From Guillardia theta CCMP2712 (lineage: Eukaryota > Protista > Cryptophyta): a DNA stretch of 64,000 nucleotides. How positions within the stretch are numbered: the stretch's first letter is position 1; each line of letters opens with the position of its first letter. A model generated the notes under the pieces. The model was not told where the DNA came from, did not search any database, and was given only the letters and a program-made list of their open reading frames with translations. This document shows positions 1 to 42,545 of the stretch, one piece after another. The position numbers and the translations under genes are program-made. The stretch is taken from positions 62,001-126,000 of the forward strand of contig NW_005434664.1 of assembly GCF_000315625.1 (NCBI RefSeq). Direction: 5' to 3'.

Positions 1-3000
1 CGTTTACTGTCGAAAAGGTAAAAGAATATGTTGATACGCAAAATCAACCAAGAGAGATTTTTGGAATAAGTTCTGTTGAATTGACAAATCATGGATATGC
101 ATTCAATTCGTTACCATCCATAATCCCTTACTATTTAGGCGGATTTCTCAACATGTCGCTTCAGGCTACAAGCACAAGTCTAAAGCTGAATTCTGAAGAT
201 GTTGCCAAACTTGGCATTGTTCCAGATTGTCAGCTATTGCTTGAAAACGAAATAGTTCTGGTTCAATATGTTGATGGAAATAATTTGACCATATCTAGAG
301 CACAGGAGGGCACGATTGCAGATTCTCACCCCGAAGGAACCAGAGTTTACCCATACCCACCGGAGATGGAGAACAGTATAACATCCCTGGTCGTGCTTGA
401 TGAAGGAATCAATTACATACCTGGGATCATCGTACTTGAAAATGCAGTGCATGGATTTGGTTTCAGAGCAAGGTTCAATGTCTCTGATGGCAAAATAAAG
501 CAGGATCTTATAACATTGTCGCGCCATGGAAGTGGCTTCCTTGTTGACCCTTTTGCTGAACCTTACTATGTTGACACGGCTGAAAAGATGACTGATTCTA
601 TTGTTTCGATTGATATATTACAACCTGGGAGAGGATATACTGTCGGAGTGATCGGAGCGACGGATATAAATGGGTCAAACTTCTCAGCCTCTTTTGAAGT
701 AAGCTCCGGGATTTTCGATGCACAAAATTCTTCAATAGTATTTGCAAGAGATAGAGGACAAATCGTCAATGTAGGGATTCTGCAACATGGGACCAATTAC
801 ACGCGTAATGCGAACCTTCAGATTCTCTATCCTGGTTCATCTGTACTCATGACGCAGTCATTGACTGAGGTTTTGCAATATTCTTTTGCTGATGTAAATT
901 TGGAAGGCTGTAGGGTGATCGCTGATGTGATTCATGCCGAAGATTCAACCGGGAATGGTCTGAGGGCTGTTGCCCAGCACGTTACGTCGAAGGCATTTCT
1001 TCTTGAGCCATATTCTTTCATTGTGAAAAGCATTGGACAAACTTGCGATTTTCCCAACGCAAGAAATTACATCTCATTGACACTTGTTACCAATACGAGA
1101 TTGACATCAGGTACTACGATATCTATTTTTGGATTGACTGGAACAGCGTCAGAAACTTTGAATCTTGCAAATTTCAAGGATTATGAATGCAATCAAGCTA
1201 TCATGCAGTGCCCTTCCCGTCTCTTTGACTTCGGTAATGCCATATGGTCAATGCAGTCAGGTTTCCTATCGTTTTCCATAGCAGAGGGACAAAACTTTGA
1301 ACCGTATCATGCATATAAATTTACGATGGCTGTGCTGAATGGGCCACAAGCCCAAGATTCTCCCACTGTACGAATTGCTGCAGACGGCGAGAATTCTATT
1401 GCAAGGACTACGATGGATTCCGATGTTGAGAGCGTGTTGGGATTCCTCGGATCCACGATTGGAAATGCAGCTCCTCTTTACATTCAAGATCAAGGATTCA
1501 TTGCTTTGGAAATCAGCCAGAGTCAAAAAATGCCAGACAAGATCAATTACTTGACAATCGGTTTTGCCTCCAACATAGATATAGCTGTTCATGAAAACAG
1601 TGCGATTCGTTTCGAAATCACAGGGATGAATCTATTCCATCTAAAGAATTTGTGCGATCCGAACAGTTTGTTGTGTCCCCTGGAACTTTCTGGTACGTAT
1701 GCGCATATGTTTGAAGACATCACGTCAAATCAATCTGCGATTGCCAATTACAACATTTCAAGCAATATTGTGTACCTGAACCCTACAGCTTCAATTCAAT
1801 CCAACAAACTGATTGAAGTGGTCATCAAGGTATATAACCCACCCTTGAGTCAAGACTCTCCCACCATGTATATGGCATGCTACAACCTCTCTGCCAACGG
1901 AAATCCCATCCTTCCAAAGACGGCTGCAAAAAGCAGTCAACTTCCTTTCTACAAGAATTATACAATTTTACGCTCAAACATATCCAGTGAACCAAGTACT
2001 TATTTCGGTAGCTTGATTGTAAGTGAATCGACAGAATCAGGTCTTGTAGAAGGAGTTTATATTTTAGTTGATCAAGAAATCATGTACGTGACTGGTACAT
2101 CTGGTGATAAGGTGTATGTGAGCAGAGGACAAATGGGATCTCAAATACAAAAGCATTTTGAATTTCAAACTTCTGTCAGAAGAAAAGTTGATGGCTCAAG
2201 TGGATCTGATTTTTTTCAGACATTCACCAAAGTGTATGTGCTGGAACATGGCACCAAACTTCAGGACAAGTCCGTGTTGAAGGTAGAGGCATGCCGTTTT
2301 GTCTTGTACAATATCAAACAGAGTTCGAAATATCCTGGGTCTTCAAACACGATTGAAATCAGACTACAATCATCCTGTGTCATCCAATCAGGATCCCGCA
2401 TTGAAATAAGCGGGATTGATGGAGCGATTATCAGACATGGTATCAACTTCTTTTCATATTCTGAATCATTTTCAGCTTTTGATTCTGGTCCCAATGGAAC
2501 GTTCTACTGGAACCAAAGTGACAGAATCATGTCTTTTTATTCATTAAGAAATATTACAGAGTTTGAAGATATCATTTTTAATTTTACAGTTCTCAATTCT
2601 ATTCGCGAAAGACCTTCTTGTAATGCTCAAATAGCTTTATTGGGCGGTGATGCCGTCTTGCTAAATGATCTTCCACCGCCTAAAACGGTGTTTCTTGTCA
2701 GCGATTTGAACCCAAACGATGCCACAGTCTTTGTCAGCAATCCTAACGATGGACTTGCAAAAGGAACCTACATCAAAATAGGGTTTGAAATTATGCAGAT
2801 TCAAGAACTATACTCCACTATTTCTCGAGATTATGTCGATGCTCTGTCAAACGTGATGTACCTGATATCAGTTAGCGAAGTTTCACCAGGTGTTCTGCTC
2901 AAAGTAGATCAAGAGCTCATGAGAGTGCAGTCAATCGAAGGCAGTCTGGTAATTGTTTCAAGAGGAGAATATGGAAGCATTGCAGCTCCACATGTATCTA

Positions 3001-6000
3001 TGAGTACTTGCTATATTGGTAAAATATTGGTGAAAAGAGGAATCGCGAATTCGCTTTCCTCATCGATTCATTATAGTCGGAATTCTTCGACTCAGATTTA
3101 TCAGCTCAGTCTTTCTACAACTGCTATGAGCATTTCCAAGCCTGTGGGCTCTTTTCTTACAATTGATTGCGAAGATATTGCCATACTACATTTTTCTCCG
3201 ATCAGTGGAGAATATCAACTTTGCAGAGGGTTTGGTCAAACCTTTCCGTCGGCGCATGCACAGGGATCAAAAATCAGGAGCTGGTTTGTCAAACGAACAT
3301 CATTGATGACACTTGATCAGGACTCGATCTTAGAAACATCAAAATTGGCCAGCTCAATGAATGAAAATGACATCTGTGTTTTGACTTCATCCAGCGTTTT
3401 GTCGGCAATTGTTGGTTCTACCATAAGAATCGAAGAAGAATACATGAAAGTCATAGAAATACAGAACAATTCATATCTTTGTGTTGAAAGAGGTCTAAAC
3501 AGTGCTCCACAATTTCACGCAAATCTTTCGGTGGTGAATATCCTCAAGTTTGATTCCCACACCGATGACCCATCACCTATGAAAATTGAATCTCTTGGCC
3601 TGTCGATTTTCAAAATCGAACATGCAAATCCATTCCCTGGTGCAACAAATCAAATTACAATCTTGTTAGTCAGTACAGTCAACTTTGGTGGAATGCAAAT
3701 GTCATCCACTTCAATCAGCAACACGATTACAATAAGTGGAATCAAAGGAATCAAACAGTCAGATCCTCGTAGTGTTGTGAGTACATTAGACATTGTTCAA
3801 ACAATCCATATGCCAGATGAACTTCAGGCAATAATTACGTTTGACGGGTACAAGATCCTTGAAGCTGGACGACTATACAGAATATCTTTTGATGTCATTA
3901 ATCAAAATGCAGGACAACGCAATCCTGACTTGCGTCTTTCATACTCAATTTTTCCAAGGATAGGGCAGATCTTTGAATTGACTGAGGGGATTAGCGCAAA
4001 TGAAAGCGAAGTGACACTGGCTAACATTTCCCTCCCCAAAACTTACAAAGGAGCATTCTTCTTGATCAATAGCGAGGTTTTAAAAGTGATCGATGCTATG
4101 CCAGATGGTATTCTCAAGTTATCTAGGGCAGAATTGGATACAAAGGCAGGAAATCATGTAGCTGGCTCGAGAGTATATTTGATGCTGATGATTAAGAATT
4201 TCGGAGGATTGAATGTGAATGATACTACAATTCTATTCTGGCCCTATTTTGATTTCGCGCTGAGCTACCCTAAAGATTTCCTATTTAAGGCAAATGAAGA
4301 ATTGATGTCGGTGCAATCCGTCTCCGGTGGGTACATGACCGTGAATCGCGGATTGCAAGGATCAAAAAGAGTCTTTCATCCAGAAGACACGCTGATGATT
4401 CCCTTTGTGACATCATCGAGCACGATTCTTTCCAATGATCAAAGATTGAGTGTAGGACAAGATTCTGAGTCTGCTCTTGGATTTATAATTTCCAATATTG
4501 GACAAAGTACTGCAGATCCAGGAGTTACAAATTATATTACAAGCACATTGGTACTCAACTCAAACTTTTTGGGAAAAGACTTGAGCTATTTCCAGATTTC
4601 AGGACTTCGAGGCACTCTAACCGAATCAACAGGAACGAGCGTCGTACTCCTAACAGCGCTTGATTTTGTCCAGACAGAAATAGCTGTCACTTCAATCAAT
4701 AACGCTGGTTTTTATGTCGACTGTTATCTTCTAATGAATGAGGAGATCGTCAGGATACAAGAATTTGCAAATACAACGCAGAAACAAGGATATATCACAG
4801 TAGAAAGTACTTATTCATTTGGATTTGACGTTGGACAATATGTCCAGGTTGAGAATGAAACTATGCGGATAAATCAGATTGATATTCATAATAATGCTTC
4901 AATTTACGTAGATAGAGGACAACTTGGCTCAAACAGGGCTTTGCACCAACCAAAGAGTACCATATTGCTGCTTCGGTTCGGAACTCTTAAATCCGAGTTG
5001 AATTCAACCACAGATGTCATCAATATATATGCTGGAGGTTTGCTTGGAAGCCTGAGTATAAATCAGCGCTGCTTACAAATAGACAATGAATTCCTCAAGG
5101 TTATAAAATTCATTGACTCAGAGCATGTACTTGTACAAAGAGGATATGCAATCTCAAACCGACAACATCATGACAACGAAAGCATCATTTATTTAGAGCC
5201 ATCTACGATTCTTGAAGATGACATCCTATTAGAAGCTGACATGCAGTCATATTATGAAAATTCTTCGTTGGCTAACGTTACATCAATCAACTCTACGTTG
5301 AATACAAGTCTCAATTTCACTGTAAACGTAAGCGAGTCTCTAGCACAGTACACACCGGGAGTAAATATTATCATTCCAAATACATCGTTCTCATTTGGAG
5401 TTAGATCTTCTTTCATAGGAAGAATAACTTCAGGGTGCTATTTGCAAGTGAATGCTGAAATCATGAAAGTAATTTCGGTCGATTCAAATAATGTGACAGT
5501 CCGAAGGTGCATGCTTGGTACATGTGCAGAAGGTGTTCCAATTCACAGGAAGAATGATGTTGTGACGGCTATTCGTAGTACATCTTTATCCTCTAAGCTT
5601 TGGTCTACTCTAACATACATGAACCTTACAAGCATGGAAGTTGCTGGAGTATCAAGCAATATGTACGTTAAGATAGGCAGTGAGATAATCTACATTGCAT
5701 CAATTGGTTTCGATGATCAAAGCATCTTACAGATTTCACGAGGACAAATTGGTACAGTGGCACAGGATCACGAAGTCAACTCTACTGTACTCCGGCTCGA
5801 TATTGATGTGCTGAATGCAAATGTTGGAGAGACTGATTTGCAGATACAAACCCGCATATATTCGAAACAGCCAAAATTGAGCCAATATGGATTCAAGACA
5901 GGAAATATGTTTAGAATTGACAATGAGATTTTTCGCATAGAGAGCATAGATAGTGGATTCATTAGAGTTGCCAGAGGGCAGCTTGGAACAAAAGCTGCCT

Positions 6001-9000
6001 ATCATGCAAACGGTACCATTTTAGAAATAGAAAATTATGCATCATTAGATCAAGTGCTGGATTCGAGTTCCACAAACTTTACATCTGGCTCCTTCGAACT
6101 TTTGTATGGTGCCATTGTTGGCAGTATCGTCCAAATAGAGAATGAACTTATGCAAGTAACTGAAATCACAGAAACAACCGTGAAAGTGAAGAGGGGATAT
6201 TTTGGTACAGCACCTGCCTATCATGAGTTTGCAAGTTCAATATTCTTATGGAATCCGATTCTCTCCATGTCGAATATATTGCGAGTGGAACGTAACAGCT
6301 TTTCAACCACACCAAGTCGACATACGAGGGGGACACTGGTTACAAGCATAATACCATTTTTAGGCAAAGTGGGACAGCAGTCTGCATTTTTCAATTATGG
6401 CATTTCAACATGGAATCAAACAGAGGGATCAGCAACAATAAACTTTCTTGGAAATACAACATTGAATGGATTTGGACTGCAAGAACAATTCCTCAGGGTT
6501 GAAAATTACTCACTGGCCTTCCTGCAAGGTGGAAATTATATCAAAATAGATCGAGAAATTCTCCAAATTATCAACATTTCTGGGGAAACTTTGTTTGTAA
6601 ACCGCCGTCAGGCCCTGACGTCTTCTACTCCGCACACAGAATTCTCAACAGTACAAAGGCAAGACTTATCTTTGGTTTTGAAGTCCATGAATGAGAGTGA
6701 AACAATACTCAGCTTTGACCCCCCTGCGATATTCCTCAATAAATTAGAAACCTATCTAACAATTGACGGGGAGATCATGCAGGTCACAAAACTTTTAAAC
6801 AATATTTCAGTGGAAGTAAGACGAGGTGCGGCACAAAGCAATCCCAAACCAATACGCCAATACGCGGCAATATACATAGCGAAACAATCTATTCTATCCT
6901 CTGACATCACCGATGCGTCAGCAGACACAATATTCCTACAGTCCGTCTCATCTTGCGGTGTGTTCGTTGGGGACTATATCCAGATTGATGACGAAGTCTT
7001 GCTCATTCTTGCCATCAGCCAAAACAATCTGTCGGTCTCCAGGGGTGCAAGCTCGAGCGCAGCTACGTCACACACAGCAGGAGCTGCCGTCATTGCTATC
7101 CGCAGCACCGCGATCGTGCAGGGATGGAATTTCCTGGAAACCGCCACGAAGCTTCTGCTACAATCGTACGACATGCCCTCTATACAGGTCGGTCGCTTCC
7201 TTCAGATCGAGGACGAGATCGTCCTGGTGACCAACGTCTCGACCGACGGAGTAGAGACCGAGAGAGGAGTAGGGCAGACTGAAGTCGTGGCACACGCCGG
7301 GGGAACCACCGTGACTGTGGTGCTCATGACCACAGTCATCAGAGAGAGCCGGATATGGCACAACGATACGGCTATACGTGTTTTCAACACAAGTGTGTTC
7401 GAGATATCTTCTGGTCTGTTCTTGGAGCTCGAGGACGAAATCATCCTCGTCAGTGATGTCAGAGCAGTATCCGACGCGGTCTTGGAGCTACAGGTAGTGA
7501 GAGGCTTAGCCGGAACATACCCCAGAGAGCATGCAGGTGGCTCGATCGTCAAGCCGACGACAGGCGCTCGATTGACGGCAGATGTGACTGCGACGGACGA
7601 TCGATTTGCGATCTCATCCAGCTTTGACATTCCAAATCTGGAGCAGGGAGCATATCTGCAGGTAGGGGAAGAAGTGGTTCGAGTGGAGGAGGTCGGTGCG
7701 GACTATTTGTTGATTTTAAGAGAACAGAGGAAGAATTTCTCCATTGGCAGCATGTTGCTCGTCATAACGACTTCTCACGTGCGTAGCAATTACTATCTCA
7801 GTGATAGCTCTGATGTTCTCAAAGTCTGGTCTTTTAAGGAAGCAACAATTTTTGAAGGTATGGCCGTTCAAATAAATGAAGAAGTTGTTTTTGTTGAAAG
7901 TATTTTGGACGACACCACTGCTATTGTGAGGAGAGGATTTGCAAACACAACTGTGAATGCTCATATGTATTCAAGTGTGGTGTACAAGGCAATGGTAGTC
8001 GGTCAAGAATACGTCTTTTCATTTCCTCTTCAAAATCCAAATGTTTTCAACGATATTTCCACAATATCTCTTAATGCTCAAGGTACATGGCAGTGGACAA
8101 ATAACATGTCGTCAGATACCAATAGTATCTTGTATAGCTACTCCTGTTCGATGGATTGGATTCCTTGCAACATCAGCTTGATTGACCAACCATCTGAAAC
8201 GCAATTATCCTTGCCTATGCTAAGTTTTATACTTGCAGAAGATTTAGGACTGAACTCTACATTTGCAATCGTTGCAATGGATTCAAAGTCACATTCTGCT
8301 CAAATTGGAGAATACTTTCAAATCGATCAAGAAATTGTGAAAATAGAAAAAGTGGAGATTTTGACCGAAATCCAATTCAATGTCACTTTGCAACGAGGAA
8401 GTTTCGGATCCTCCATCACAGGACACGCATCCTTTTCCCAATTTCACACTTGTCAAATGAATTTGCTCGAATTTGATTTCTTTGATAACTACATGCAGGA
8501 GTGCATTACTGTTGAGAAAGAACGTATGCTACCTTTTGCAAGAACTGGTGAGGTTGTTTTGGTTAGACGAGGATTCCGATCAAGTGAAATAAGTGATCAT
8601 CCCTCTCAGAGCGCTGTATCGCTCTGTCTTGTCGATATCGTTGTGGGCTCATCCAGTTATTTGCCCTTTTTCACTCCAGGCAAATTCGTGCAAGTTGATG
8701 AGGAAGTTTTCCAGATTCAAAGCAAAGCTTCAAATCGCCTGACGGTAACAAGAGCGTCATTGAACACAAGTGTTGCGCCTCATGCGTTGGGTTCACCTGT
8801 ATTCCTTGTGGCTTCTGGGTTTAAATATGGTGACTCAAAGCCCCTGAAAGTCAACCCTCCGGGATTTGTCATTCGAGACATAGGTCAAAACAATCCCTTT
8901 CGGTCCTCTGCAATATTAGACAGAAATCATTTGTCAATAACGCTTGTTCCAAATGTCAACCTGTATGGAAATTCGAACACCGTCATCACCATCTCAGGTA

Positions 9001-12000
9001 TCAAATCAAACTCTCCTTGCGGAGAAATTTGCGAGTCTTATTGCAGATCCAACAGGAACCTCAATTTGATATATGATGCCAGTGTTCAGAAAATATTTGG
9101 AAACTCGGGGAACTGGCAGATGATTTCCAGTCAAGGTTACCTTCGACTCACAATGCAGTCTAATTTCGTTTGGCAAAAAGACTCAGCCCAGTACTTCGGA
9201 TTTGACATCTATAACCCACAAACTTCTACAAAGAACATCACTTGTCCCCCAGCTGATGTGAAAGTTTCGGTTTCGACACAAGATGGACTTTCATATCAAG
9301 CTTCCATGACCTATGGATTAATCCAGTCTCCAGCACTTGGTCTCCAATCAGCCGATTCCGCTCCGCTTCAAATATTGCCGTGTACAGAAGAAGATTGTGT
9401 TCTGCTCTCAAGCGTAGGTCAACAAACTTACTTACCTTCGGTTGAAAATACGATCACCGTCACTTTGTCATTTCGTGCACAAACAAAATATCCATCTTTA
9501 CCTAGCTGTGCTTCTCCATTTTCAAATGCTTTTGCCATCACGATTACAGGCTTGACTGGAGCAACCACTGATGCAACAGGCATTATTCAGGCAGATGGTA
9601 AAATTCCTCAATACAGAACATATCTGCAAGCAAGCTCTGGGAGTATCGGTTCGAATGCAATCTCTGACACTCAGGTGCAAGTCTCAGATCTGCCGAATGT
9701 AGTGCTTCAGGTTGGCCAGTACATTCAGATTGATTCAGAGATCATGAGGATTTTGGATTATGACAGCAATAATGATGGAGTTATCGGGGACTTAACCGTG
9801 GAGCGTGCACAAATGAATACAGATGCAAGCAGACATTACAATGGTGCCGCAGTTGACGTAATATTACCAGTGTTTGACGTCTACAAGTGCACGTCCTTTA
9901 GTATAGATGGCTTGAAGTGTTATCAGTGGCAACCGATATCAGCATGTCAAAATGGAAAGTGGGACAGGTTGAGTGGCACCGTGATTGTTGGTATAACGGC
10001 AGATTTGCGAGCAGGCGAAGCATTCAAGTTTTCTTTTAAACTTCTCAATCCAAATGACGAACAACAAAGTCCACAAGTAAGCATTAGCGCGTATGGGTTA
10101 AGTTTTTATGAAGCGGATACAGTCCAACATAATCAGATTCAATCGCAAAGAATGAATCGAGACTCTACCACGTTAATCAGAATACCGCAATCAGAATACG
10201 GCTTTGCTCAACCTTTATTTTGTACTGGACAAAAGCTCCTGCAGGCTTCGATAGGTCAAAGTTCGTATTTGCCGAGTGCGGAGAATGTCTTGGCGGTGAC
10301 ATTGACTTCTTCTGTAGCGATTGGAGGAAGGTCAAAGAGTGAATTTACCATCACAGGACTCCATGGCTTGACCATGGCTCAAACAGAGACAAATATTCAG
10401 CTGGAAAGTGTCGTCATTCTGCAAGGATATATCAAAGCGCAATTAACATCAACTACAATTGAGATGAATCACTATATAGAATCCTATTCAAAAATATACG
10501 TGGGATACTACATACAAGTTTGTTGTGACCAGGCCGGACTCAGTCAGACAAGGCAAATCGTCAGTCACGATTCTTACCACGTGCTTGTAATCGATTCACC
10601 GTTTTCCATTGCCTTGCTATCTCCTATCTCCTTCAAAATAGTTTCGGATGTGTCTCAAGTCTTAAGTATCTCAGCTGAAGCTTGGAACGAGACCTCGGGT
10701 GTGCTGATACTCAGCACCGACCCAAGTCAATCATTGGTGTTGTTGGCTGGGAGATCGTTTGCATTTCAATTCCGCATGATCAATCCCGCTTATGGAAGGA
10801 ATTTTTCGAGCATCAATTTACAATTTTCGAACGCTTATATTTGCATTGGTGGTGTGCACAGTGGAATAAGCTGTCAAAGTTTGGAAGATATACAAACCTG
10901 TGGTCTCGATGGAGGTTGCGTTGCAGTACAGATAGTTCCAACCAAGCTTAGTTTTGATCCAAATCAGCTCCCCTACAAGAGTTACTCAACATTGCAAAAT
11001 TACATTCCTGGTAATTTCGATGCCGTCATCACTTTCAATATAAGTAATTCATCAAATCTCATGATGTATCAGAGTCTACAGCTTGGAAGAGAGCTGCTGA
11101 AGATCTTGACAATTGACGGAGCAACTATAACAGCCTCGCGCAATCTCGATGTCTCAATTGTAACTGAACACGTTGAAGGATCAATGATCTATGTGATCCA
11201 GCCAGGAGCCTTTCCAGGGGACATTGCTCCACTTCAGATACGGTGTCGTGGTTTTGCAGCCTTGGAGTTGACCATAAATAGCAGCACTGCCTCGGCCCTC
11301 AATCAAGTCGCATTCTTCTTTGTGCGTTCTACGCTACTTCCTGCTAGAACTGAAATAAAGCTGACAAATTTTGAAGTACATTTGAAATCGGAAGATAGCA
11401 TTCTCAAAATACAAGGTCCAGGTGCTTTTGGGTTTGCAGCCAACGTCGATGGAGAAAAGGGGACTGCGTTGTGGTCAGAGGCAGACAAAACTCTCAAACT
11501 CTATGCGATGGAAGATGTGGCACCAGAAATGATTGTCGGGCTCTCGTTCATTGGTTTCAATAGCATTTACTCCAAGCAACTACAGAACGTGCAGGTCATG
11601 GTCGAAACTTTGACTGAAGCTTACGAATTAGCCATTTTGCAATCCGGATCTTCGAATGTAATAATCAATGGGTTGTCGTCCTCGATTCATGCACAAAATG
11701 CATCTTTCTTGGACACAAGTTGTTTTTCAATTCGAACTCTTCTGAGCGAAAATAGATATCTCGTACTCAAACCTCTGCTTAATCAGCAACTCTCAATCAG
11801 TAATGTCCTGCCATTCATGGCCACTAATGTCAGCATCACATTCAGACTGTCTATTGCTGTATCTGACGATCATGGAGTCAACCTTACGATATCGGGTTTG
11901 ACTGGAATGCAAACGCCTAGCACGGGAGGCATTTCTTATCTCCTCTATGATCTATTCAGAAATGATAGTTCCTTTGAGATTGACACAGCTTCTGGAGCAC

Positions 12001-15000
12001 GGATATCTTCAGGGAGTTTTGTGAGGATAGACCATGAAATCCTTGGAGTGATCAGAGTTGAAGGTGACAAACGAATTTATGTCAATAGAGCTCAATTTGG
12101 TTCCAAACTCTGTGATCATCAGCGAAGAACAGAAGTCGAAGTTGTTTTACCTATCTTTCGTGAAAACAACAACAGTCAATCGATTGCAACAACAGCTAGT
12201 ATTTGGAATCAGGAAAGTGGAACGCTTGTCATCAGCCCACAGGAGATTGGATTCATCTCGAGAAATCTGAACAGCATTGAAACTCACTTTGAATTAGATC
12301 TGTATGATGAATCTAGCATTCTATCAGGGAGTTATTTTCAGGTTGAGAACGAAATTTTTCAAGTGCTGAACCAGTCAAGTAATGCTGTCACTGTTGTGAG
12401 AGGCGTCTACTCCACCTGTAACACCTTTCATGCTTCCGGGTCAAAGGTTAGTGTGGCACTACTTCCAGATGTCCCTTACGAAATTTCATTTCCATTGGTG
12501 CAAGGGGCTTCGCTTTCACCTATTTTACCGCAACTCTCCATCGCTTTACAATTTCCCTTCGAGTATTTGCCGCAAATTGATCGCGACTCTATCCTCGGCT
12601 TCAAAGGTTCTCAACCTGGTGATGCTGCAGCCCTGAAAATCTTATCGGCTCAATTCACGGTACTCACAGCATCCCAGACGAACCCTTACCCAAATGCTTC
12701 CAATCTCATTAAGGTGACGTTTGGCCTTAGTATAGACATAAACAGTTCACATTTCAGCATTCGCATTTTAGGGCTAAATGAAAGTCAGAATTCCGAGGAT
12801 GGTGTTGTTCATGTTGTCCCCGTCCCATATCAAATCCAGTCAGGAGATATTGAATCCTTTGAAGGGACAATAAGCTCGTTTGTTGTGGTGAATTCTTACA
12901 CCTCAATAGTTGGATGTCTCGTCTCGGTGTCGTTCAATCAAAACATTCATTGGCGTGAGATTGTCAACTATGATAGCAATTTTACAATTTTGCTGAATGA
13001 GAGTATCTATTTCCAGAATGATACCAAGTTTTCGTACTCTATTTGGAGTGTACTGCCTTCTCTTTCAACGTATGCTAGCATTCACCACGGAATTGTGGAG
13101 CTCCAATGGAATGGAACGCTCCATAAGGGTTTGCCTTATTCGTTTGCACTCCACATTCAGAATCCAATGGTAGATCTCAGTCCCGGCTTGGTACGATTGT
13201 TCTGTGAAGTCAAAATGGATACATTCAGTGTGCTACAGGAAATATCTCATGACGATTCTGAAATATTGTTCACTTCGGTCTTAATTCTGGAGGAGGATGC
13301 TCCTTCAAGTGCGCTTTTCTTAAAATGTGAATGTCTAAATAACAAGTGCTGCACAAACTATTCAAGAATTTTACTTTCCTCCATAGACAAAGTCTTCATT
13401 GGTAATTCAATCCAAATCGGAGACGAAAAGATGACAGTCATTGCAACTGAAGATGAATATGTTCTGGTGAGCAGAGGGCCAGTGTTATCTCACCATCCAA
13501 AAGGCTCGCTTGCTTACATTCTGAGAATTGGACCCTCACGAGGATTGGTTGTAGGAAGCTTAAACATTCAATCACAATTGTTGGGGCTAGAGGACAGATT
13601 TTTCAGCGTGAAGTTAAATTACCAGTTGTCCCAAGGACAGCTGTTCTTCATCGATGATGAATTGATTCGTGTGATTTCAAGCAATGTCTCGTTGATCGAA
13701 GCTGACAGAGGGGTAGCCGGGAGCTTGCAAGCTGATCATTCAAACTCGAGCACAATCCAGTTCCCTTTGGTCTCTGGTTTACTCTTCACAGAAGACTCCC
13801 GACCTTTGAGGGTCTATAACCCCGAATTCGTCCTGCGAAATATTGGGCAAAGCAACCCATTCCCTGGATCCAAAAACAAAATCTATGTGACGCTTGCGAC
13901 AAATATTCAACTCAAATCTGATTGCCAAATTCAAGTGAACAATCTTGCTGGATTGAACATATCGTCTGGAAACTTGACAATTCATGATTTTCATGAAGGC
14001 TCGTTTGGAGTTTTTGGATCAGAAGTATTCTCTACAGGAGATAAGATCTTTGTGTACATTGCAAATGAAAAAAAAATGGAGACCGACCTGCCTTACAAAT
14101 TCTTTTTTGAGATCAGAAATAACCTTCAAGGATTTGATTGGATTCAACCTGAAATTTCCGCAAATTGTTCCGACTTTCATATTGAAGGGAAGCCAATGCA
14201 TTCTGATCACATTTCTGTTCCAAATGTATTGGGCAGTAATCAAGGAGATGCAAGGCCGTTTTATGTTGCTCCTCCTGCCTTTGTCTTGAAGGAAATTAGC
14301 CAGAGTACGTCGACAATAGGTAATGATTTTCTTTTTGTTCACACACCGTGTTATTGATGTTTGGTCACAGGTGGAAAGAACAATATTTACGTAACGCTAG
14401 CTTCGAATTTCAATATCCTCGGTGGATCAAAAATAATACTTGAAGGGCTGCGAGGCGTGGTTTTAGAAGAGCTCACGACAATTGTTCAAAACAAGGTCAC
14501 AATAACATCTGGTTTTTTTGTTGCTTTCAATCAGACTGCCATAAATTTGAAAGCAAATGAGCAAGAAATTGATTACTATAAAGGATGTGAGATCTTACTT
14601 TTTACTGAGTCAGAAGAAAGTAGAGTGGAATCTAGACAGATAATTGCTTTCATGGGAGGGATGGCGTTTTTGAGTTCTCCTCTAAAACCAACACAAATGA
14701 ATGGCACATTTGTAATTCAAACGCAGATTTTGTCTGAAATCGATGACGTGGCTCTGTGGAATGAAACTGTAGAATCTCTAACCGTGACTGTGAAGGCTGG
14801 GGGAGCTTTGAAATCAAACATGACTTACAGTTTCCGTTTCCTACTCACAAATGGTTTCACTCTGCAAGATGGTCTTACTATCAATGTGACCGTGAAAGGA
14901 GGTATTTCAATCGTCTCAAGTCCAATGCGGAGTACCGCTGGATCAATCCTCAACATTTCAATCCTAGACCATGGAAAAGATTTCAGCCAAGACCCACTTC

Positions 15001-18000
15001 TGTTCGTAGCTAGTACCTCAACTTGCTTCTGTGGAGATCGACTGCTAGATCAACCTGGCAATGCTCGTTACTGTCTTAAACCGATAGTTGCTCTTGGAGC
15101 CTCCTTCAACTTCACAAGAGCTTTTGGAGCCAGGATCCTTGCTATCCGTGCGTCCGGAGCTCTTCTCCGGCCGAATCTCCCGAAGTCCATCATACCTCCT
15201 GTAGTGCTCGAGCCAGATTTAGCAACGATCCCTTCAGTGACGAATGCCATCCCGCAGCCACAAATCGGAGATGCGGCTCCTCTCAAGGTGTATGGATCTG
15301 AGTTTGTAATATCTACTATAGGGCAGAGCAGTCCCTACCCGGCAGCAACAAACACTTTGACTGTAACGTTGTGTGCGAATCTCTTGCTCACATCTCTTGC
15401 TATCATCACCATTGAAGGTCTCACGGGAGGAAGCTCGCCGACAGGAGCGCTGGCTTTGGAGGGACCAGGGGCTCTGTCGTTTCAGAATGCGGCAACTGGA
15501 ATACCAGGAACAGCGGACTGGAACGATAATCGCAAGACTTTGAATCTATTTGTAGTTTCCAATGTGTCCGTCTTTTCCGTTCAAATTTTCAGCTTCAACC
15601 TGCAGAATTCAATTTCAGGGCAAAGCTCTCCACCAATTTCTTTGAGCGCCAGTGGAATAACTGGTGGCGTATACCCAGTCCCATCAAGAATTCTTCGTAA
15701 AGCAATGACGAAAGATCTTACAACGATCTTAACTAATATCTTAGGTGCATCCCAAGGTGATGCTGCTCCTCTCAAAATTCAAGCTCCTAAATTTCTGATC
15801 AAACGGGTCTCACAATCTTATGCTTGGCCTTGTCAGAGCTGTGGCGTGCAAAATTATATCCATGTTACACTTGCTGTTAACTTCATCGCATCTGGATTGA
15901 CGAACAGTGAAATCATTCTCTCAGGATTGCGAGGGTCTGCGACATCCGATTCAGGCGGAAATTCAATATTGGTTGCAGATCTTGATGCAGAAGCTTCGGA
16001 AATGCTCATAGATGATTCTAGCGGCAGTTTGACTTCGCGAGAGGGCTCTCGACTGTACTTAAAGGGCAATCCAGTGATCGAAGAATGGTTTTCCACTTTC
16101 ACTCAGGTTTCAGGAAGCGCCTACCTCGATCAAGGCATACACGACCTCCGGTTGGAGTACAAGGAATTGACTGGACTAGCCAAAGTAAGCTTGAAATGGA
16201 AATCGTCTTCTGGCATCTTGCAACCTATTCCAAACTCAGTACTGTACTATGGTAAAGCAGCCATAGGGACTGAGATCAATGTGTACGCCTGCGGCGATGG
16301 GCTTGTTTCAAGATCGGCAGAAGAATGTGATGATGGGAATACAGAATCAAACGATGGATGTTCGAGCAGCTGCAGCGTTGAATATGGTTATTCATGCCAT
16401 TCCACCCCAAGTCTTTGCAAAACGATTTGTGGGGATGGTAGGAGAGTTTCTTTAGAGTACGGAGGTTTGGAACAATGTGATGATGGCAACTTGTACGATG
16501 GAGACGGGTGTAGCTCAGCCTGTGCGATAGAATTCAACTACTCCTGCATCGGAGGCACTCCACTTACGAGGGATTACTGTAAGGTTTTGCCTCCAAGCTA
16601 TGACACAAGCGATAAAACCATTCATCTTGACTTCGTAACAATTACTGTAAATTCTGAAACCCGTGCTTCAAAATTATTGATTCAATTCCTTCCTTCACAA
16701 ATTTTCTTTCCGACCGAATCAAATTCTGTGAGATTGAGCGTGCAAAGAAATGGTACAAGACTTCGGAGCTTTGCTACACGGGATGGAATGTTAAGAAGCG
16801 ATATATCCTCTGATGAGTTCCTCCTGAAAGTTGGAGGAGGTATCATATTCAGAAGCATCTTTCTTAACACGACAACATTGAAATTAGATGTGTTGCACTG
16901 TTATGACATCAACAACATTCTCATCCAAAAAGAAGACGCTGCAATCAGTGGAATCATTGGTTCTACTTACAATGATAGCTCGCCATTGAATTTGAAGAGT
17001 CTTGGATTTATAGAGAATTTAATCTCACAAAGCACATCATCTGTCGCATCAATCAATATTCTGAAAGTATCCATAGCTCTAAACATAGACGTTCCCTATG
17101 ATCCGAATGAATGTGGGTTGACAATCAAGGGACTGACAGGAAGTGACAGCCCACGCACGCAGGGGTTTACCAGCATAATTCCTCTTGATGAATATGTCCA
17201 AGTATTACAAGTAAGCGACTCACAGTTGTTCTCTAATGCAGGGATTGGGATTCTCCGAATTGATCAAGAGCTTATGTTGTTTCAAGAAAAACGAAACCTG
17301 CTGTATGTCAAAAGAGGATTTCTTCGCTCTCTACAGAAATCACATGAAGACCTGACCAACGTAATCTTGGAGAATGTCGCATTCATCCAAGAAGGACTAA
17401 ATGAAAGCGATAGTACTTCTCTTGTTGAATCTGCATCCTTTGCAAACATCAAACCAAACGATATCCTGCAGATTGATCAAGAATTGATTTTCTTAGAGTA
17501 TGTGGATCTTCATTATTCAATCTGCCCCAAAGGCTGCGAAAGACAGATTGACCTTCGATGCCAGTGTTTTGCAAGTCGATACGACAGACTTTCCTTTCAA
17601 AGAGGAATAGGAAATACTCTACCGACTTCTCACAAGAATCACGCTGTCATTCAGCGATTATTCGTTGACTACATTGTAAATCATCCTGTTTCGACATCAG
17701 ACACTTTTTTGAATTTAAGAAAGCGGGATTTGACAATCGAGGGGGTCTTTCTGTATCGAAAGTACATCAAATTAGGAACAGAAATCTTGTTTGTAAACTC
17801 GATCAATTTTCCAACTGCTGGCGTCCGACGAGGAACCGTGGGCACACGACCTTTGTCAATCGCATTAGGTACTCTGGTCGAGATTCCAAAACAATCTATT
17901 CTATCCTCTGACATCACCGATGCGTCAGCAGACACAATATTCCTACAGTCCGTCTCATCTTGCTGTGTGTTCGTTGGAGACTATATCCAGATTGATGACG

Positions 18001-21000
18001 AAGTCTTGCTCATTCTTGCCATCAGCCAAAACAATCTGTCGGTCTCCAGGGGTGCAAGCTCGAGCGCAGCTACGTCACACACTGCAGGAGCTGCCGTCAT
18101 TGCTATCCACAGCACCGCGATCGTGCAGGGATGGAATTTCCTGGAAACCGCCACGAAGCTTCTGCTACAATCGTACGACATGCCCTCTATACAGGTCGGT
18201 CGCTTCCTTCAGATCGAGGACGAGATCGTCCTGGTGACCAACGTCTCGACCGACGGAGTAGAGACCGAGAGAGGAGTAGGGCAGACTGAAGTCGTGGCAC
18301 ACGCCGGGGGAACCACCGTGACTGTGGTGCTCATGACCACAGTCATCAGAGAGAGCCGGATATGGCACAACGATACGGCTATACGTGTTTTCAACACAAG
18401 TGTGTTCGAGATATCTTCTGGTCTGTTCTTGGAGCTCGAGGACGAAATCATCCTCGTCAGTGATGTCAGAGCAGTATCCGACGCGGTCTTGGAGCTACAG
18501 GTAGTGAGAGGCTTAGCCGGAACATACCCCAGAGAGCATGCAGGTGGCTCGATCGTCAAGCCGACGACAGGCGCTCGATTGACGGCAGATGTGACTGCGA
18601 CGGACGATCGATTTGCGATCTCATCCAGCTTTGACATTCCAAATCTGGAGCAGGGAGCATATCTGCAGGTAGGGGAAGAAGTGGTTCGAGTGGAGCAGGT
18701 CGGTGCGGACTATTTGTCTGTCGCAAGAGGACAATACTTGACGGAAGTTGTTGCCTTCCCCTCGCGATCTCAGCTCATTCTGTGCGACAGAACTCTCTTA
18801 ATCCTCGGATCAGACATGGCCGCTTCATCTCTAACACTCTCTCTGGACGTGTCATCGTGGAACTTTAGTCCCGTTGTTGGTGATTACCTGCAGGTTGAAG
18901 CAGAAGTCGTGCGAGTCGGTCATATCGATACTTCTGGTAATTCATTCACTGTCCAGCGGAGTATGCTAGGGACTGTTGCCGTCAACCATCCAGATGGAAG
19001 CGTAGTTAAATCTGTGAAAACATACAAACTAAATGTGAAGTATCCGATGGACCAAGCTCAGGGATGGATGATGATCGATAGCGTGGATATGGAAGCTTTC
19101 TTTGTTGGGGGTATCCTACAAATCGATGATGAATTAGTTGGTATCTCCTACATGAACATCTCAAATCTCACTGTTACAAGAGGAATTTTCAGCTCGGCAA
19201 CTTCCTTTCACAGCAATGGAACTATCGTTCCATATCTCAGCGCCTCGCTCTCCATGAAAGAAACCGGGTTCTATCCTGGCCAACTTTCGATTGAAGATGA
19301 AATCATAAGTGTTGCTTCCACTCCTCTCACCTTTCAACCATATACTTACCTGAAGATTGACGAGGAAATTCTACTAGTCAAGGCAAATCTCAGCAATGCC
19401 TTGTATGTGGTTGAGCGAGGGTCTGCTGGAACTGCTGTCTCAATACACTCCGACGGGTCGATCATCACTCAACTTCGTATGACTGTTTTGAATCACAGTG
19501 AAGGGTTGTCAGAATTTGACAATCGAACGATGTTATCAAGAACCGCCTACTTCTGTACGATCCGGGTGGGAACGTTCATGGAGATTGAGGATGAAATTGT
19601 CCGTGTATCGAGCGTGGCAGACCCTTATGTTTTTATCTCTCGGGGACAAGCAGGAACTGTTCCAAGATTCCATCCTGACAAGGCGAAAGTGTCGATCCCA
19701 ATAGAAACTTTTCTTTTGAACGACTTAGAAGCTACAACAAGCACATTCAGTGTTGAAGACGCATCAGCAGCTGATATCAGCATCAGTATGTACATACAAA
19801 TTGACGAAGAAATCATGTTTGTTCAAAATAAGACTGGGGATCTCGTTACTGTACTGCGTGCTCAGAGGTTTACTACTGCTTCCTTTCATTCAAAGTATTC
19901 CATCGTGATTGCGGTGCGGAGAACAGGCTTGTTCATGAATTATACTTTGGACATTGTTTCAGAAGAGATTAATGTATACTCAGCAAAAACTGCAGGAATA
20001 TTGCCCGGGTCAGATTTGATCTTAGGAAACGAATACCTCTTTGTCACGGATGTTGAAGGAAACCGTTTGACTGTAAAACGAGGAATGTACAACTCCTCAG
20101 TTGAGAGTCATCACTCAGGCGCAAAGATCTCTGCGACTACACCTCTGATCTCACAATCACAGTCTCCTGACAGATTCGCTCCAAATGGTTGGGACCCCCT
20201 CACTGGCACGCTTGCAATCAAGGTTCTAACTAGCCTCATCAAGAATACTGCATACTCCTTTGCTTTCCCCTTACTCAACCCTGCCGCACCTCAAGGGCCC
20301 GTGACACCTGATCTAATCCTCAGCTGTGGAGCAGTTTCTCTACAGCAGACAATGAGTGTCAGCAGCAGCTCGCCTCCCCTCCAAGTCGACCCTCCTGCCT
20401 TCATCGTAAAAACTATCCGTCAAAGCTCTCCGTATCCTGAGGCAACCAATGTCATCCGGGTTGAGTTTGCCGTGAACTTCGATGCTTCTCCTCCATCTGC
20501 AGTTGTAGTCTCTGGCCTTGTGGGAAGCTTGACTCATGATGACAATCATCTTGCAATCGGCCCTTGCGATCTCAACGAAGTAGGCGTGTTTGACATAGAG
20601 GCAAGGTGGCAACAGAATTCCGGAACGATCTCGCTTCTCACAAGGAACAACAGCCTGATCGAAGCTAACAAGCTTTATTGTTTCACTTTCAATCTTACCA
20701 ACCCGACCTTATCTCAGAATGCAAATGACGTTTACATCGTTCTCTCAAATCAGAAGATTTCAGCTCAAGGCAAAATGGAAACAGAGGCATTCTGTATCCC
20801 CTCTTCTGGACAATCCCAGCTTTCTGCATACATTCCTGATCCTGTTACAAGTATCTTAGCAGTAATGAGTACTGCTGCATTTCAAAATGGTAAACTTATA
20901 CAGTGTGATGAGGAAATCATGCTGGTTCAAAGGATTCACAATGATACCATCTTGCAAGTTTCTCGTGGGTATGGAGGCAGCAACGCAACTTGTCACAGCG

Positions 21001-23445
21001 TTGGAATGACAGTCTACAGCATTCTACTAGGCGCTCAACAGGGTGACTGCAGGCCGTTGAAAATTTTGACACCTGGCTTTGTTCTCAAAGCGATCAAGCA
21101 GAGCACTTTCTATGCTGATGTCACCAATCGGATGACGGTTGAGCTTGGGACGAACGTTGATCTGCCTATCGCCGCATCCATCACCATCAATGGGTTGAAG
21201 TCGTCAAGCACTGAAGATTCTCCTTTTCTTCCTCTGAAATATTCAACAAGCAACGCGTCAATCTTCGGGCCGTACGGAGCTTGGACCCAGAGCGAAGGGA
21301 CCTTGATTCTGAGGGTGACGGCAAACAGAAGCATTGAAAAAGATACAATCTACTCCTTCAGCTTTGCGTTGAAGAATCCGCTGCTGACATCTGAACCGAA
21401 GTATGGGATAGGTCATAGTCCTCCTGATGTTTTCATCTCGTCATCAAGCAGTCGAACCATCCCTCCTGTCATCATGTCGTGGGATCAGGGGGCTCCTTGC
21501 CTTGATTACCTCAGTCTGCTCAGCAGTGTTGACAGTATTCAGAATGCCATCCAAGTATCCAACGCGTCGAGAGTCTATGCTGGGTATCAGCTGAGGCTAG
21601 ACAATGAGCTTGTTGGTGTTGTCAGAGTCCTCAATCTCACCGTTTGGGTGCAGCGAGCGCAGGGAGAAACCTCCTCGGAGCCGCACCTAGAGGGGTCTCA
21701 AGCTTGTGTCATCGTGCCTGGAGCTAGGAGGGGGTACGCGCGGCCTTTCCTCATAGTCAAGCCAGGAATCTCAGCTGCTCTCTGCTCACAGCAGTCGAGC
21801 TTTCAAGACACCAACAACTCTGTCTCTTTGATCTTTGCTACAAGCATGCTCATGTCATCTTGGCAAATCGCAACGTTGACTGTGACAGGTCTCTCTGGCA
21901 TGAGCGGAGTGCAGCCAGTGCGCATCCAACACGTAGGGGGCAAGTTGGTATTCGAGGAAGAGGCAGAGTTGGTGCCGAGAAGCGGAGAGATGATTCTGAG
22001 AGTTGTTGCTGACTTGACGTGGCTGCCATATGAAACAACTTGGATCTCATTCAATCTTGTCAATCCCAAGTACTCCATTCGAAATAATCTGGTTGAGTTC
22101 TGGTTCAGAGATTTTCAATCAAGCCTGACGTTTCAGGGTGTTTTCTTAGATCCGCAAACCCTCCAACAAACTTCCCTGATCGTCCAAGAGAGCCATTTTC
22201 TGATCAAGACAGCTTATCAAAGCACTCCTCTGCCCTCGGCCCTAAACAACATAACCGTTCATTTCTCTCATAGCTCAAGGCTTACAGCTGCAACCCTCAC
22301 CCTGCATGGTTTGACTGGGTCGCAAACGCCTGATGACAATGTCTTACCTCTGGTACCTTCTTCTGATTCTCAACTTTTCCTTCCGACCGAATCTCGTTGG
22401 AACCAGTCGTCAGGCCAGCTCATAGTCCCGTGTGACAAGGACATTCCGCCAGGAGCCACCATCTCGTTTCAGTTCTCCCTGAGAAATCCTCCCTTTGAGA
22501 ACCTGGTCTTGACTCCCCTCATCGAAATCAGCTCGGCAGATCTCACCATCCCACCTACAGCCTTTGATATCAACCACCACTATCCCTGCATTGGTACAAC
22601 GAGTCTGATGTACGATTTTTACGTTTGCTTCAATCATGCGATGGAGGTAGTATCTGTGGAAGAGGCACAAATTCAGAAAGGTTCAATGATTTCCATTGAA
22701 GGTGATCTGATTGTTGTTGATGAAGTGCTGGGGGAACAGCTTCAGATTGAAATGAAGCACAAGGTTTCTTCAAATACCATGTACAAGGCAGGTACACCAG
22801 TGTGTCACGTCTTTCCTGGTACAACCACTCTCGACGTCAACCCTCTGCAAACTCTAGCGCCAGGATTTCAAGTGATCAGGATGGCTCAGAACAATCCAAC
22901 CCCTGGCTCCTTGAATCAAATTAGCGTCACGTTTGTTGCCAACGTGCTGATGGAGGTCGGGGCAGTATCAGCTGTGGTTGTGAGCGGCTTCAAAGGGACT
23001 GGCGCTCAAGTCATGACCATCGTTGGCACTCAAGTGGATGTCAACGGGACTGATTCTGCCGTGTTTGATCACAAAGGAGTGTGGAATGAAAGTGCTGGGA
23101 GTTTGACGCTGACGATCGCAGAAGGGAAGTCGATCATGCCAGGAAGATACTACTCCGTGACTTTCGTCGTCATCAACCCCCCGAATCCTCTCCTTCAGAC
23201 ACCAGACTTCGTCTTAAGCGCAAGATGCTTTCACTCCGATTCAAGCATTTACTATCAGGTCACGCAGCGAAACCAAACGACAGCGCTGCAGGAGTACAAC
23301 CAGGTAGGCAGAGAAAAGAGCTCGATGCTTCTTCTTACTCTTGTTTCCACAGACTCTCGTGCTGGAGCTGCCGTGCCTTGTAAGTGCCTTCGCGACATTC
23401 CCTGAGAAAGAGCAGAGCGACTCTCATCAAGTCGAATTCAGCTAG
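1..23445 (+). CDS. Giant (>7,700 aa, 5'-partial) multi-module repeat protein, probably extracellular/surface; ORFs 81..14357 and 14361..23405 are exons of one gene
   Basis: The frame is open from base 3 (FTVEKVKEYVDTQNQPREIFGISSVELTN...). The 51-nt intron 14320..14370 (AG|GTAATG...TCACAG|GT) rebuilds the recurrent motif EISQSTSTIG-GKNNIYVTL. A further intron 23304..23352 leads to a stop at 23443-23445 (3' end less certain). The same repeat families occur in both ORFs, with many N-x-S/T sequons. Confidence 0.9.
6882..7710 (+). repeat. Internal duplication, copy 1 (829 bp)
   Basis: Nearly identical to 17889..18717 (offset 11,007); about 5 substitutions seen by eye. Confidence 0.95.
14320..14370 (+). 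other. 51-nt spliceosomal intron containing the in-frame TGA that splits the giant ORF
   Basis: GTAATG donor, T-rich body and CACAG acceptor. The size matches other introns in the window and splicing restores the domain consensus. Confidence 0.9.
16030..16250 (+). other. C-terminal half of a PA14-like domain within the giant protein
   Basis: LTSREGSRLYLKGNPVIEEW...SGSAYLDQGIHDLRLEYKELTGLAKVSLKWKS...IPNSVLY follows the PA14 consensus (SDDGSRLxIDG...LxxGxHxIxLEYxE...LxW...IP). Confidence 0.75.
16290..16580 (+). repeat. Two Myxococcus-type cysteine-rich repeats (CGDG...ECDDGN...DGCS..C)
   Basis: CGDGLVSRSAEECDDGNTESNDGCSSSC and CGDGRRVSLEYGGLEQCDDGNLYDGDGCSSAC. Confidence 0.85.
17889..18717 (+). 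repeat. Internal duplication, copy 2 (829 bp)
   Basis: Nearly identical to 6882..7710; the alternative-frame ORFs in the track are also duplicated (6913/17920, 7202/18209). Confidence 0.95.
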
Positions 23446-23524
23446 AATTGAGCCGGACGAATGAGACCGGAGAGGAGAGGTTAGCTAGGGGAAGGTGTTG
23501 TTTCTCATTTCTATTGAATCAAAG

Positions 23525-42026: not shown

Positions 42027-42545
42027 GTCGTGATGGCAATGCTATCTACAAGACCTCTGTCATTCTACAGGCTGACTGACTTGCTGATCTAACACAAACT
42101 GACTTGCTCTCTCTCCCTCCCTCCTTGCGTATCAGATCTCGGTTTGTGCGCTTCGTACAGGTCGAAGTGCCTAGATGAGGGGGGTGATTTTTAGGACACA
42201 AGGGGGTGGGGGTCCTGCTAACTTGGACTGATGCTGAGAACGTGTGGGGGAGGGCGGGCAGGGGAAGGGAGGGGGAGGGGAAAGGAAGAGGAAGCAGCAG
42301 AAGGAGAGGAGAAGAATGTGTAGAGAAGGAAGAAGACAACGAGAGGATAGAACAAAGTTGAAAGACGAGGAGGGCAATGTACGGAAGAAGGAAAACGGAG
42401 TTTGAAGAAGCAACAAAGTAAGGGTTGAGCGTAAGTTGGAGAGGGAGAGGAGGAAGAGGTGAAGAGTTTGAGAAGGAGATTTCGTCTAATCTTGCATTCA
42501 TTTCATGACATGACACGTGCTGGCAGGGAAGTAAGAACATCAGTC

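Follow-up and report, generated by a model that had tools for sequence, protein, structure and literature searches.

We describe a giant gene of the cryptophyte Guillardia theta CCMP2712, found at the left edge of a 64,000-nucleotide (nt) stretch of DNA (assembly GCF_000315625.1, contig NW_005434664.1, positions 62,001 to 126,000 of the forward strand; hereafter the window, in whose coordinates nt positions are given). It is a single nuclear gene that codes for a protein of at least 10,672 amino acids (aa), and all of its features described below lie on the forward strand. The protein is composed of two main repeats, a scaffold (S) that is modelled as a ~140-aa β-sandwich and a small β-barrel module (M) that recurs every ~74 aa, and the scaffolds are repeatedly interrupted at two fixed positions by modules or chains of modules. 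On balance, and with modest confidence, we favour the overall reading that this one giant gene encodes a rod of S domains whose fixed loops are filled with M, and that the rod is a secreted, fibrous component of the cell surface.

Residues are numbered by counting codons from nt 3, such that residue n starts at nt 3n. Between nt 3 and nt 23402, frame 3 is interrupted by a single stop (the TGA at nt 14355-14357), compared with 477 and 415 in the other two frames, in agreement with an earlier note on this DNA, made from its letters, that had described one giant protein. The open reading frame (ORF) of frame 3 runs to nt 23405, but the gene extends further: an intron of 49 nt leads on to a last exon whose TAG stop (nt 23443-23445) gives the end coordinate, 23445, of that note. 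With the introns removed, the reading covers 7,780 residues in the window. The window is identical to the G. theta scaffold JH992974.1, where the same frame is open over all 8,675 nt covered upstream and is still open beyond 2,892 further codons, which hold additional scaffold pieces and modules, nested ones included. These codons, added to the 7,780 residues, give the lower bound on the length of the protein, and they bear out the expectation that the gene, open at the left edge, is larger than what the window holds.

We modelled each repeat with a profile hidden Markov model (HMM) that was started from one example and iterated against the translated ORF. The M model, with a 44-aa core (consensus ISVGSYLQIDEEIMRVQSIDGNTLTVSRGQAGTAATSHAEGSTV), matches 47 times at domain E-values of 1e-6 to 1e-19. 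The S model matches as 26-27 pieces which, ordered by HMM coordinate, form 21 units, 12 of them uninterrupted and nine split. These counts are close to the ~21 scaffolds and ~45 modules counted in the earlier note, and the sequence landmarks named there lie exactly where it placed them (GLRGTLT at nt 4602, WNQTEGS at nt 6411 and YVFSFPLQNP at nt 8010).

Where a unit is split, its N-terminal piece extends as far as HMM positions 55-63 and the next scaffold piece starts at 49-70, while in three-piece units the middle piece covers HMM ~57-90 and the last piece starts at 86. In at least seven units, the pieces complement one another along the HMM and are correctly ordered. Insertions fall at two hot spots, one after the 'ITISGLTG' strand (HMM ~55-69) and the other in the loop after the 'W..G.L.L' strand (HMM ~86). 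The inserts consist of one M, of chains of 7 to 13 M, of a different domain of ~88 aa (X), or of a PA14-like domain combined with a cysteine-rich cassette. The proposal that modules often sit at fixed loops is thus borne out by the two insertion positions, with the correction that ~16 of the 47 modules are in line between scaffold units on the main chain. Three of the inserts are X and one is the PA14-like stretch plus DUF4215.

The longest insertions are found in S5 and S16. S5 is in three pieces, nt 4479-4634 (HMM 4-55; aa 1493-1544), 6402-6461 (HMM 71-90; aa 2134-2153) and 7983-8132 (HMM 86-135; aa 2661-2710), with eight module hits in the first loop (nt 4710-6341) and seven in the second (nt 6525-7982), where the earlier note gave about seven per gap. 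Its layout is collinear in two transcripts of the cryptophyte Hanusia phi (P0023 and P0004). S16 (nt 17004-20369) consists of nt 17004-17162 (HMM 4-55; aa 5668-5720) and 20121-20369 (HMM 49-132; aa 6707-6789), and the loop between them (nt 17250-20129) holds 13 modules, in line with the ~13 given in the earlier note; its closing junction is kept in Hanusia P0001 and in Rhodomonas P0033. The second loop of S5 and the loop of S16 are linked by an internal duplicate of 829 nt that is 99.4% identical between its two copies (nt 6882-7710 and nt 17889-18717).

Shorter insertions follow the same scheme. S7 (nt 9405-9581, HMM 7-55, aa 3135-3193; and nt 9948-10175, HMM 70-134, aa 3316-3391) contains a single nested module at nt 9705-9854, and S10 (nt 11799-11930, 12147-12242 and ~12474-12572) has one module in each of its gaps (nt 12003-12137 and 12318-12449). 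The X inserts occupy the first insertion site of S8 (nt 10239-10406 and 10671-10841; X of 88 aa at nt 10407-10670), S11 (nt 12645-12815 and 13089-~13202; X at nt 12816-13088) and S13 (nt 14277-14477, with a 51-nt candidate intron inside, and 14739-14951; X at nt 14478-14738). In S15 (nt 15783-17003), a cassette of a PA14-like domain (nt 16029-16232) and a DUF4215 cysteine-rich repeat in two stretches (the better one at nt 16386-16523) comes after the N-terminal piece (nt 15783-15986, HMM 2-63).

Structure predictions are consistent with this nested arrangement. We folded the split S7 with AlphaFold2 on an alignment of 100 scaffold domains, all uninterrupted and taken from relatives, using scaffold rows only (with module-only rows added, MAFFT placed scaffolds onto the module). 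Both scaffold halves are modelled at a predicted local distance difference test (pLDDT) score of ~90-94, with strands at positions 6-13, 21-30 and 51-55, then the insert, then 191-194, 199-203, 213-221, 233-243 and 246-256. An uninterrupted module plus scaffold (aa 6932-7170; nt 20796-21512) is modelled at a mean pLDDT of 88.7 and a predicted template modelling (pTM) score of 0.76; the scaffold has the same series of strands as S7, and the module is a compact domain of six short strands with pLDDT above 90 across M. These models agree with the earlier idea of a β-sandwich scaffold and, going by pLDDT and strand assignment, we infer that the two halves of S7 reassemble into one sandwich. A Foldseek search of the Protein Data Bank (PDB) with the nested S7 model gave no match below E = 0.014. 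Each insert exits the sandwich at a scaffold loop and comes back at that same loop, and so forms a closed lateral loop. The image of looped-out side arms is therefore right in that the inserts are looped out, but they are not free-ended bristles, and a third of the modules belong to the main chain.

The arrangement is conserved in other cryptophytes. Collinear Hanusia phi transcripts correspond to aa 802-2397 (P0023), aa 2442-5964 (P0004, which spans the TGA) and aa 6272-7767 (P0001) at ~64% identity, and outside the two stretches that separate the transcripts, the 6,566 aligned positions contain only four gaps of at least 5 aa. Identity is even across the parts of the protein: 64.1% in S, 65.9% in loop modules, 63.4% in in-line modules, 63.7% in X and 64.7% in the PA14 region. 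Rhodomonas salina (P0033) and several relatives from metagenomes likewise have the pattern of split scaffolds with modules. Word-based protein searches had almost no sensitivity for this family and returned only 2, 22 and 1 matches, among them the Hanusia and G. theta sequences.

The module M belongs to a domain family known from bacteriophages. Pfam and NCBIfam contain no family for M. The M profile, searched against the PDB, matches a phage Chi tail-tip protein (8VJH, two stretches, E = 6.5e-14) and a baseplate protein of the Pseudomonas aeruginosa phage JBD30 (8RK3, E = 1.3e-5), as identified in the corresponding studies (PMC11945409; PMC11445458). Among 30 modules, 16 match phrog_1101 (best E-value 1.2e-8), and M also matches the PHROG tail and tail-fibre families 11439, 4406 and 2885. 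The M model further superposes on predicted Caudovirales proteins in BFVD over 75-91 columns at 1.1-2.5 Å and 19-28% identity. M, a small β-barrel, is thus a homologue of a domain found in the tail-tip hub and tail-fibre proteins of siphophages.

The context of M in the phages is different. Siphophage tail-tip and central-fibre proteins are trimeric, ~700-1,300 aa long and carry an M-type domain once or twice, whereas the G. theta protein carries at least 54 copies of M, with tandem chains as long as 13 copies that are inserted into another domain. We considered whether the whole protein could be a phage tail-tip or fibre protein and rejected this: no Pfam phage-tail family is found in the 10,672 residues, no other phage tail domain, such as a hub, gpJ or fibre core domain, is present, the neighbouring genes are eukaryotic and the introns are of the spliceosomal type. 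There are also giant bacterial proteins with M only (P0042, P0150 and P0142), which likewise have long tandem arrays of M (8-18 HMM hits each) but lack the S scaffold and the nesting. One of these, P0042 (3,652 aa, 18 modules), is encoded on a planctomycete-like contig of GCA_964458015.1 (L001 10001-20959) next to glycosyltransferase and glycoside-hydrolase genes, a setting that is relevant to the origin of the module, and other M-only giants have planctomycete-style N-termini.

The scaffold S, in contrast to M, has no assigned family. No Pfam family covers any S copy in the 10,672 residues or in seven S-family relatives (the NCBIfam scan covered the modules, not S), precomputed Pfam annotations show none over S either, and a PDB profile search with S gave a best match of only E = 0.18 (PcoC). 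Models place S, as a ~140-aa β-sandwich, in the same fold class as type II cohesin (3L8Q), the N2/N3 domains of MSCRAMM adhesins (SdrE, SdrG, FnBPA and ClfA), Cnm N2 (7LGR) and CBM2 (6QFS). There is no sequence relationship to these proteins, and the Foldseek TM-scores (0.47-0.55, normalised on small targets only, with a best E-value of 2e-4) are too low for a superfamily assignment. G, T, G and R residues are invariant in the X insert, which is conserved in Hanusia and has no match in the PDB. The possibility that X is a diverged module was rejected (hhalign probability 0.9% against M). For the S15 cassette, DUF4215 (PF13948) scores 53.3 bits over its two stretches, above the gathering score of 27 bits, and PA14 (PF07691) is weak in the window at 17.4 bits against a gathering score of 24 bits. 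Rhodomonas salina P0251 has the same PA14 and DUF4215 cassette with PA14 at 27.1 bits, and a metagenomic stretch (P0241) reaches 27.2 bits. The earlier suggestion of an undescribed class of protein is thus upheld for S, which is without a Pfam family, and for the locus, which is known as hypothetical fragments, but not for M, with its homology to a phage tail domain.

A profile of M plus S, searched against 1.84 billion representative proteins, matches 4,087 proteins at E <= 1e-3 and 309 at E <= 1e-30, counts that include module-only proteins. The best 150 matches fall into three classes, namely S-only giants with 20-30 tandem scaffolds, M-only giants and proteins with both S and M. Among these 150, all S+M proteins with a species name are from cryptophytes (Hanusia phi or Rhodomonas salina), and the others are from marine metagenomes or Logan contigs. 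The S-only giants (P0003, P0005-P0009, P0015, P0018 and others), which come from marine metagenomes and Rhodomonas salina, share the same S in 20-30 tandem copies with the G. theta protein but differ from it in having neither M modules nor domain insertions. In some of them the N-terminus resembles a signal peptide and extracellular cysteine-rich or PAN domains are present; none has a functional name. Cluster look-ups returned, besides EukProt species labels, only 'hypothetical protein' and one 'cysteine-rich repeat protein' as names for the family, and our literature search found no paper on this protein. We also note two ENA contigs of 119 and 103 kb (L003 and L004) in which adjacent ORFs have scaffold, module and PA14 content; these runs are probably one giant, intron-broken homologue from an uncultured cryptophyte-like eukaryote.

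In the reading that we favour, the main chain is a string of S sandwiches interspersed with M barrels, and the two tolerant sites of S have been filled in evolution with M, chains of M, X or the PA14-like and cysteine-rich cassette. The chain leaves a sandwich and later returns to complete it, which produces a rod with closed lateral loops. The rod would supply length, possibly in the ~100-nm range (a rough estimate from typical domain sizes, not a computed value), and the M loops and the PA14 cassette may serve as lateral contacts or glycan-binding elements.

The protein is probably a secreted, N-glycosylated, fibrous component of the cell surface, because it and its relatives carry extracellular-type companion domains, the number of sequons is in excess and relatives have signal-peptide-like starts. 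Specifically, the window protein contains 123 NxS/T sequons, compared with 75.6 ± 7.7 in shuffled sequences. S-family relatives carry PAN, ephrin-receptor-like cysteine-rich, PA14, DUF4215 and CHB_HEX_C/Fn3_assoc domains, and three that appear complete (P0015, P0036 and P0011) have N-termini that resemble signal peptides by hydrophobicity. The earlier note had listed surface, scale, flagellar hair and extrusome as possible locations. The sequence features favour a secreted surface protein and do not separate these four.

An alternative is that the protein acts inside the cell, as an elastic or ruler-like part of the inner periplast, the rhizostyle, the flagellar apparatus or the ejectosome. 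Titin-like giants of tandem β-sandwiches are cytoplasmic, and the part of the protein covered here shows neither a signal peptide nor a membrane anchor, both of which would suit such a role. We consider it unlikely in view of the extracellular-type domains of this protein and its relatives (DUF4215, PA14, PAN, ephrin-receptor-like and CHB_HEX_C), the enrichment of sequons and the signal-peptide-like starts within the S family. Moreover, candidates for the cryptophyte inner periplast are already known in the epiplastins (PMC6212826).

A second alternative keeps the protein outside the cell but makes it an adhesin or lectin, which would bind bacteria, mating partners or substrates through its PA14 and phage-type modules and would not be a structural coat. 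The presence of a PA14-like domain, the derivation of the module from host-contact organelles of phages and the surface and polysaccharide gene context of M-only giants in planctomycete-like bacteria all point in this direction. However, the studies of the two phages show no receptor role for the M-type domain (PMC11945409; PMC11445458). A purely adhesive function would be rather improbable; it overlaps with the secreted surface rod and does not exclude it.

A more specific proposal concerns the cryptophyte periplast. We know of no literature that identifies a gene for a polypeptide of its surface component. To judge by the title of their paper, Perasso, Ludwig and Wetherbee reportedly described in 1997 a secreted polypeptide of high molecular mass from the surface periplast component of Komma caudata (cited in PMC6212826 and PMC12223506). 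As far as that title goes, the likeness to the G. theta protein lies in the lineage, the very large size and a secreted, self-assembling character, the last of these inferred for the G. theta protein; the likeness is a hypothesis and not a match. By this analogy, the G. theta gene family would be a candidate for the surface periplast polypeptide. That this gene and its cryptophyte paralogues are the long-sought polypeptide of the surface periplast or fibrous coat, and at the same time represent a distinct construction principle, a sandwich rod with loops filled by a module shared with phages and bacteria, is a tentative idea that we regard as doubtful at present.

The integrity of the gene depends on how its single internal stop is read. 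Exon 1 (nt 3-14319, frame 3, already open where the window begins) is followed by a candidate intron of 51 nt (nt 14320-14370, GTAATG...TCACAG), exon 2 (nt 14371-23303, frame 3), the 49-nt intron (nt 23304-23352, GTAGGC...CCACAG) and the last coding exon seen (nt 23353-23445, frame 1). The 49-nt intron is confirmed by Hanusia P0001, which reads from ...EYNQ straight into TL(I/V)L(D/E)LPC. The TGA lies within the 51-nt interval, and excision of this interval joins ISQS, seven residues and N.I.VTL at exactly the spacing of the scaffold consensus. The 17 codons of the interval are 29% identical to Hanusia, compared with 62-73% in the flanks. Hanusia transcript P0004 has a continuous ORF across the site and includes an open, 16-codon equivalent of the interval. 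The TGA is thus likely to sit within a spliced intron, but splicing at nt 14320-14370 is not proven, because the Hanusia protein retains this open equivalent. We also considered a selenocysteine at the TGA (context C-Y-TGA-C) and rejected it, as the intron fits the register and the low conservation better; no search for a SECIS element was made.

If the TGA were instead a real stop, the locus would comprise two or more genes or a pseudogene. Besides the in-frame TGA and the unspliced Hanusia equivalent, this is suggested by the small gene models that the G. theta reference annotation places here, at least three of which (414, 490 and 251 aa) lie inside the giant ORF (L005 1928-3947, 10001-11841, equal to window nt 1326-3166, and 15452-16250). 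However, the 490-aa model (GUITHDRAFT_134076), which maps in blocks to nt 1326-3163, leaves out conserved stretches of the domains and is clearly mis-spliced, and the public annotation fragments the locus. The TGA falls in a canonical GT..AG interval that restores the domain register when removed and is poorly conserved relative to its flanks, the Hanusia ORF continues across it, conservation is even on both sides and 9 kb of open frame follow. Both breaks between the Hanusia transcripts are at the 829-nt duplicate, as a short-read assembler would produce, and therefore give no sign of separate genes. Separate genes or a pseudogene are accordingly very unlikely.

We separately note that Hanusia P0001 extends ~130 aa beyond the stop of the window ORF and that its tail still matches the sequence downstream (nt 23450-24210), in shifting frames, with one 20-aa block at 85% identity and two window TGAs opposite Hanusia cysteines. 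This match could reflect further exons, a conserved 3' untranslated region or a chimeric transcript.

The 829-nt duplicate itself could have arisen by recent gene conversion, by unequal recombination or by collapse or expansion in the assembly. Since two loops are nearly identical over its length, loops of the rod may well grow and become homogenised through unequal recombination among them, and probably do so. It is far less credible that there is no nesting at all and that the split scaffolds are truncated remnants of unequal crossing-over in a linear string of beads with broken domains: active recombination within the gene and the barely detectable closing pieces of S10 and S15 would fit, but at least seven units have complementary, ordered pieces with breaks at two shared positions, S7 folds at pLDDT ~90 in both halves, and split pieces match intact domains in conservation (~64%), in a pattern kept in Hanusia and Rhodomonas.

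Several points nevertheless weigh against the overall reading of a single gene for a secreted, nested rod. Transcript support comes from Hanusia phi and not from G. theta transcripts or proteomics, and it includes an open stretch in place of the proposed 51-nt intron. In S10, the third piece is seen by its motif only, with a weak HMM score, and the closing piece of S15 is suspected only (at ~nt 16590-16800). The module nested in S7 is poorly modelled on a shallow alignment, and the contact between the two S7 halves is read from pLDDT and strand assignment. No transmembrane segment or anchor is found in the 7,780 window residues, and the N-terminus lies beyond the part covered, so that a signal peptide is not seen for this protein. 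Finally, the link to the Komma caudata polypeptide consists of a paper title and size alone.

Giant surface proteins made of tandem β-sandwiches and single domain insertions are both already known. New here is a gene whose coding sequence spans at least 32 kb, or at least 10.7 thousand codons, and which the G. theta reference annotation missed in favour of fragmentary models; its paralogues were probably missed likewise. S constitutes a large unnamed domain family, with many giants from marine metagenomes, that deserves a family model. The repeated and conserved insertion of chains of 7-13 domains into fixed loops of a 140-aa sandwich is unusual, and the nested protein is a natural test case for the folding and secretion of such proteins. 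The massive amplification, in a eukaryote, of a phage-tail-type module that is also present in bacterial giants raises the question of transfer. If the periplast proposal were true, the G. theta gene would provide a concrete candidate for the surface periplast protein of cryptophytes.

The remaining repeats of the window map as follows. A module precedes S1 at nt 216-347. The uninterrupted S1-S4 lie at nt 1014-1436, 1488-1892, 2295-2639 and 3612-3950, and among them are in-line module cores at nt 2046-2168, 2760-2810 (weak), 2880-3011, 3144-3275 and 3411-3536. In-line modules at nt 8301-8441, 8547-8618 (weak) and 8670-8801 precede the uninterrupted S6 (nt 8856-9311), and another at nt 11061-11189 precedes the uninterrupted S9 (nt 11250-11615). 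S11 is followed by in-line modules at nt 13392-13508 and 13626-13757 and then by the uninterrupted S12 (nt 13818-14222). S14 (nt 15297-15731), the uninterrupted copy used as a reference in the earlier note, has the best HMM score. The uninterrupted S17-S21 are found at nt 20391-20789, 21069-21491, 21780-22118, 22188-22565 and 22857-23234, with in-line modules at nt 20880-21014 and 21576-21701 and a degenerate one near nt 22670. Two stretches, nt 348-1013 (aa 116-337) and nt 14952-15296 (aa 4984-5098), are matched by neither HMM; they carry recurring short motifs of the 'G.GY / G.NY' type and may be further small domains.

The giant gene also differs from its surroundings in composition, with a G+C content of 39-46% across most of it (window 1-18000) compared with 46-58% in the rest of the window (18000-64000). 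Downstream, a simple repeat occupies nt 24839-25259, where minus-strand ORFs encode SHLIS many times in a row. The neighbouring ORFs between window positions 26000 and 59000 are ordinary eukaryotic genes, which include those for an SPRY-domain protein (nt 27076-28608, minus strand), two ankyrin-repeat proteins (one with a PDZ domain), a Ulp1-type protease (nt 42459-43898) and a SET-domain protein (nt 49938-50858, minus strand).

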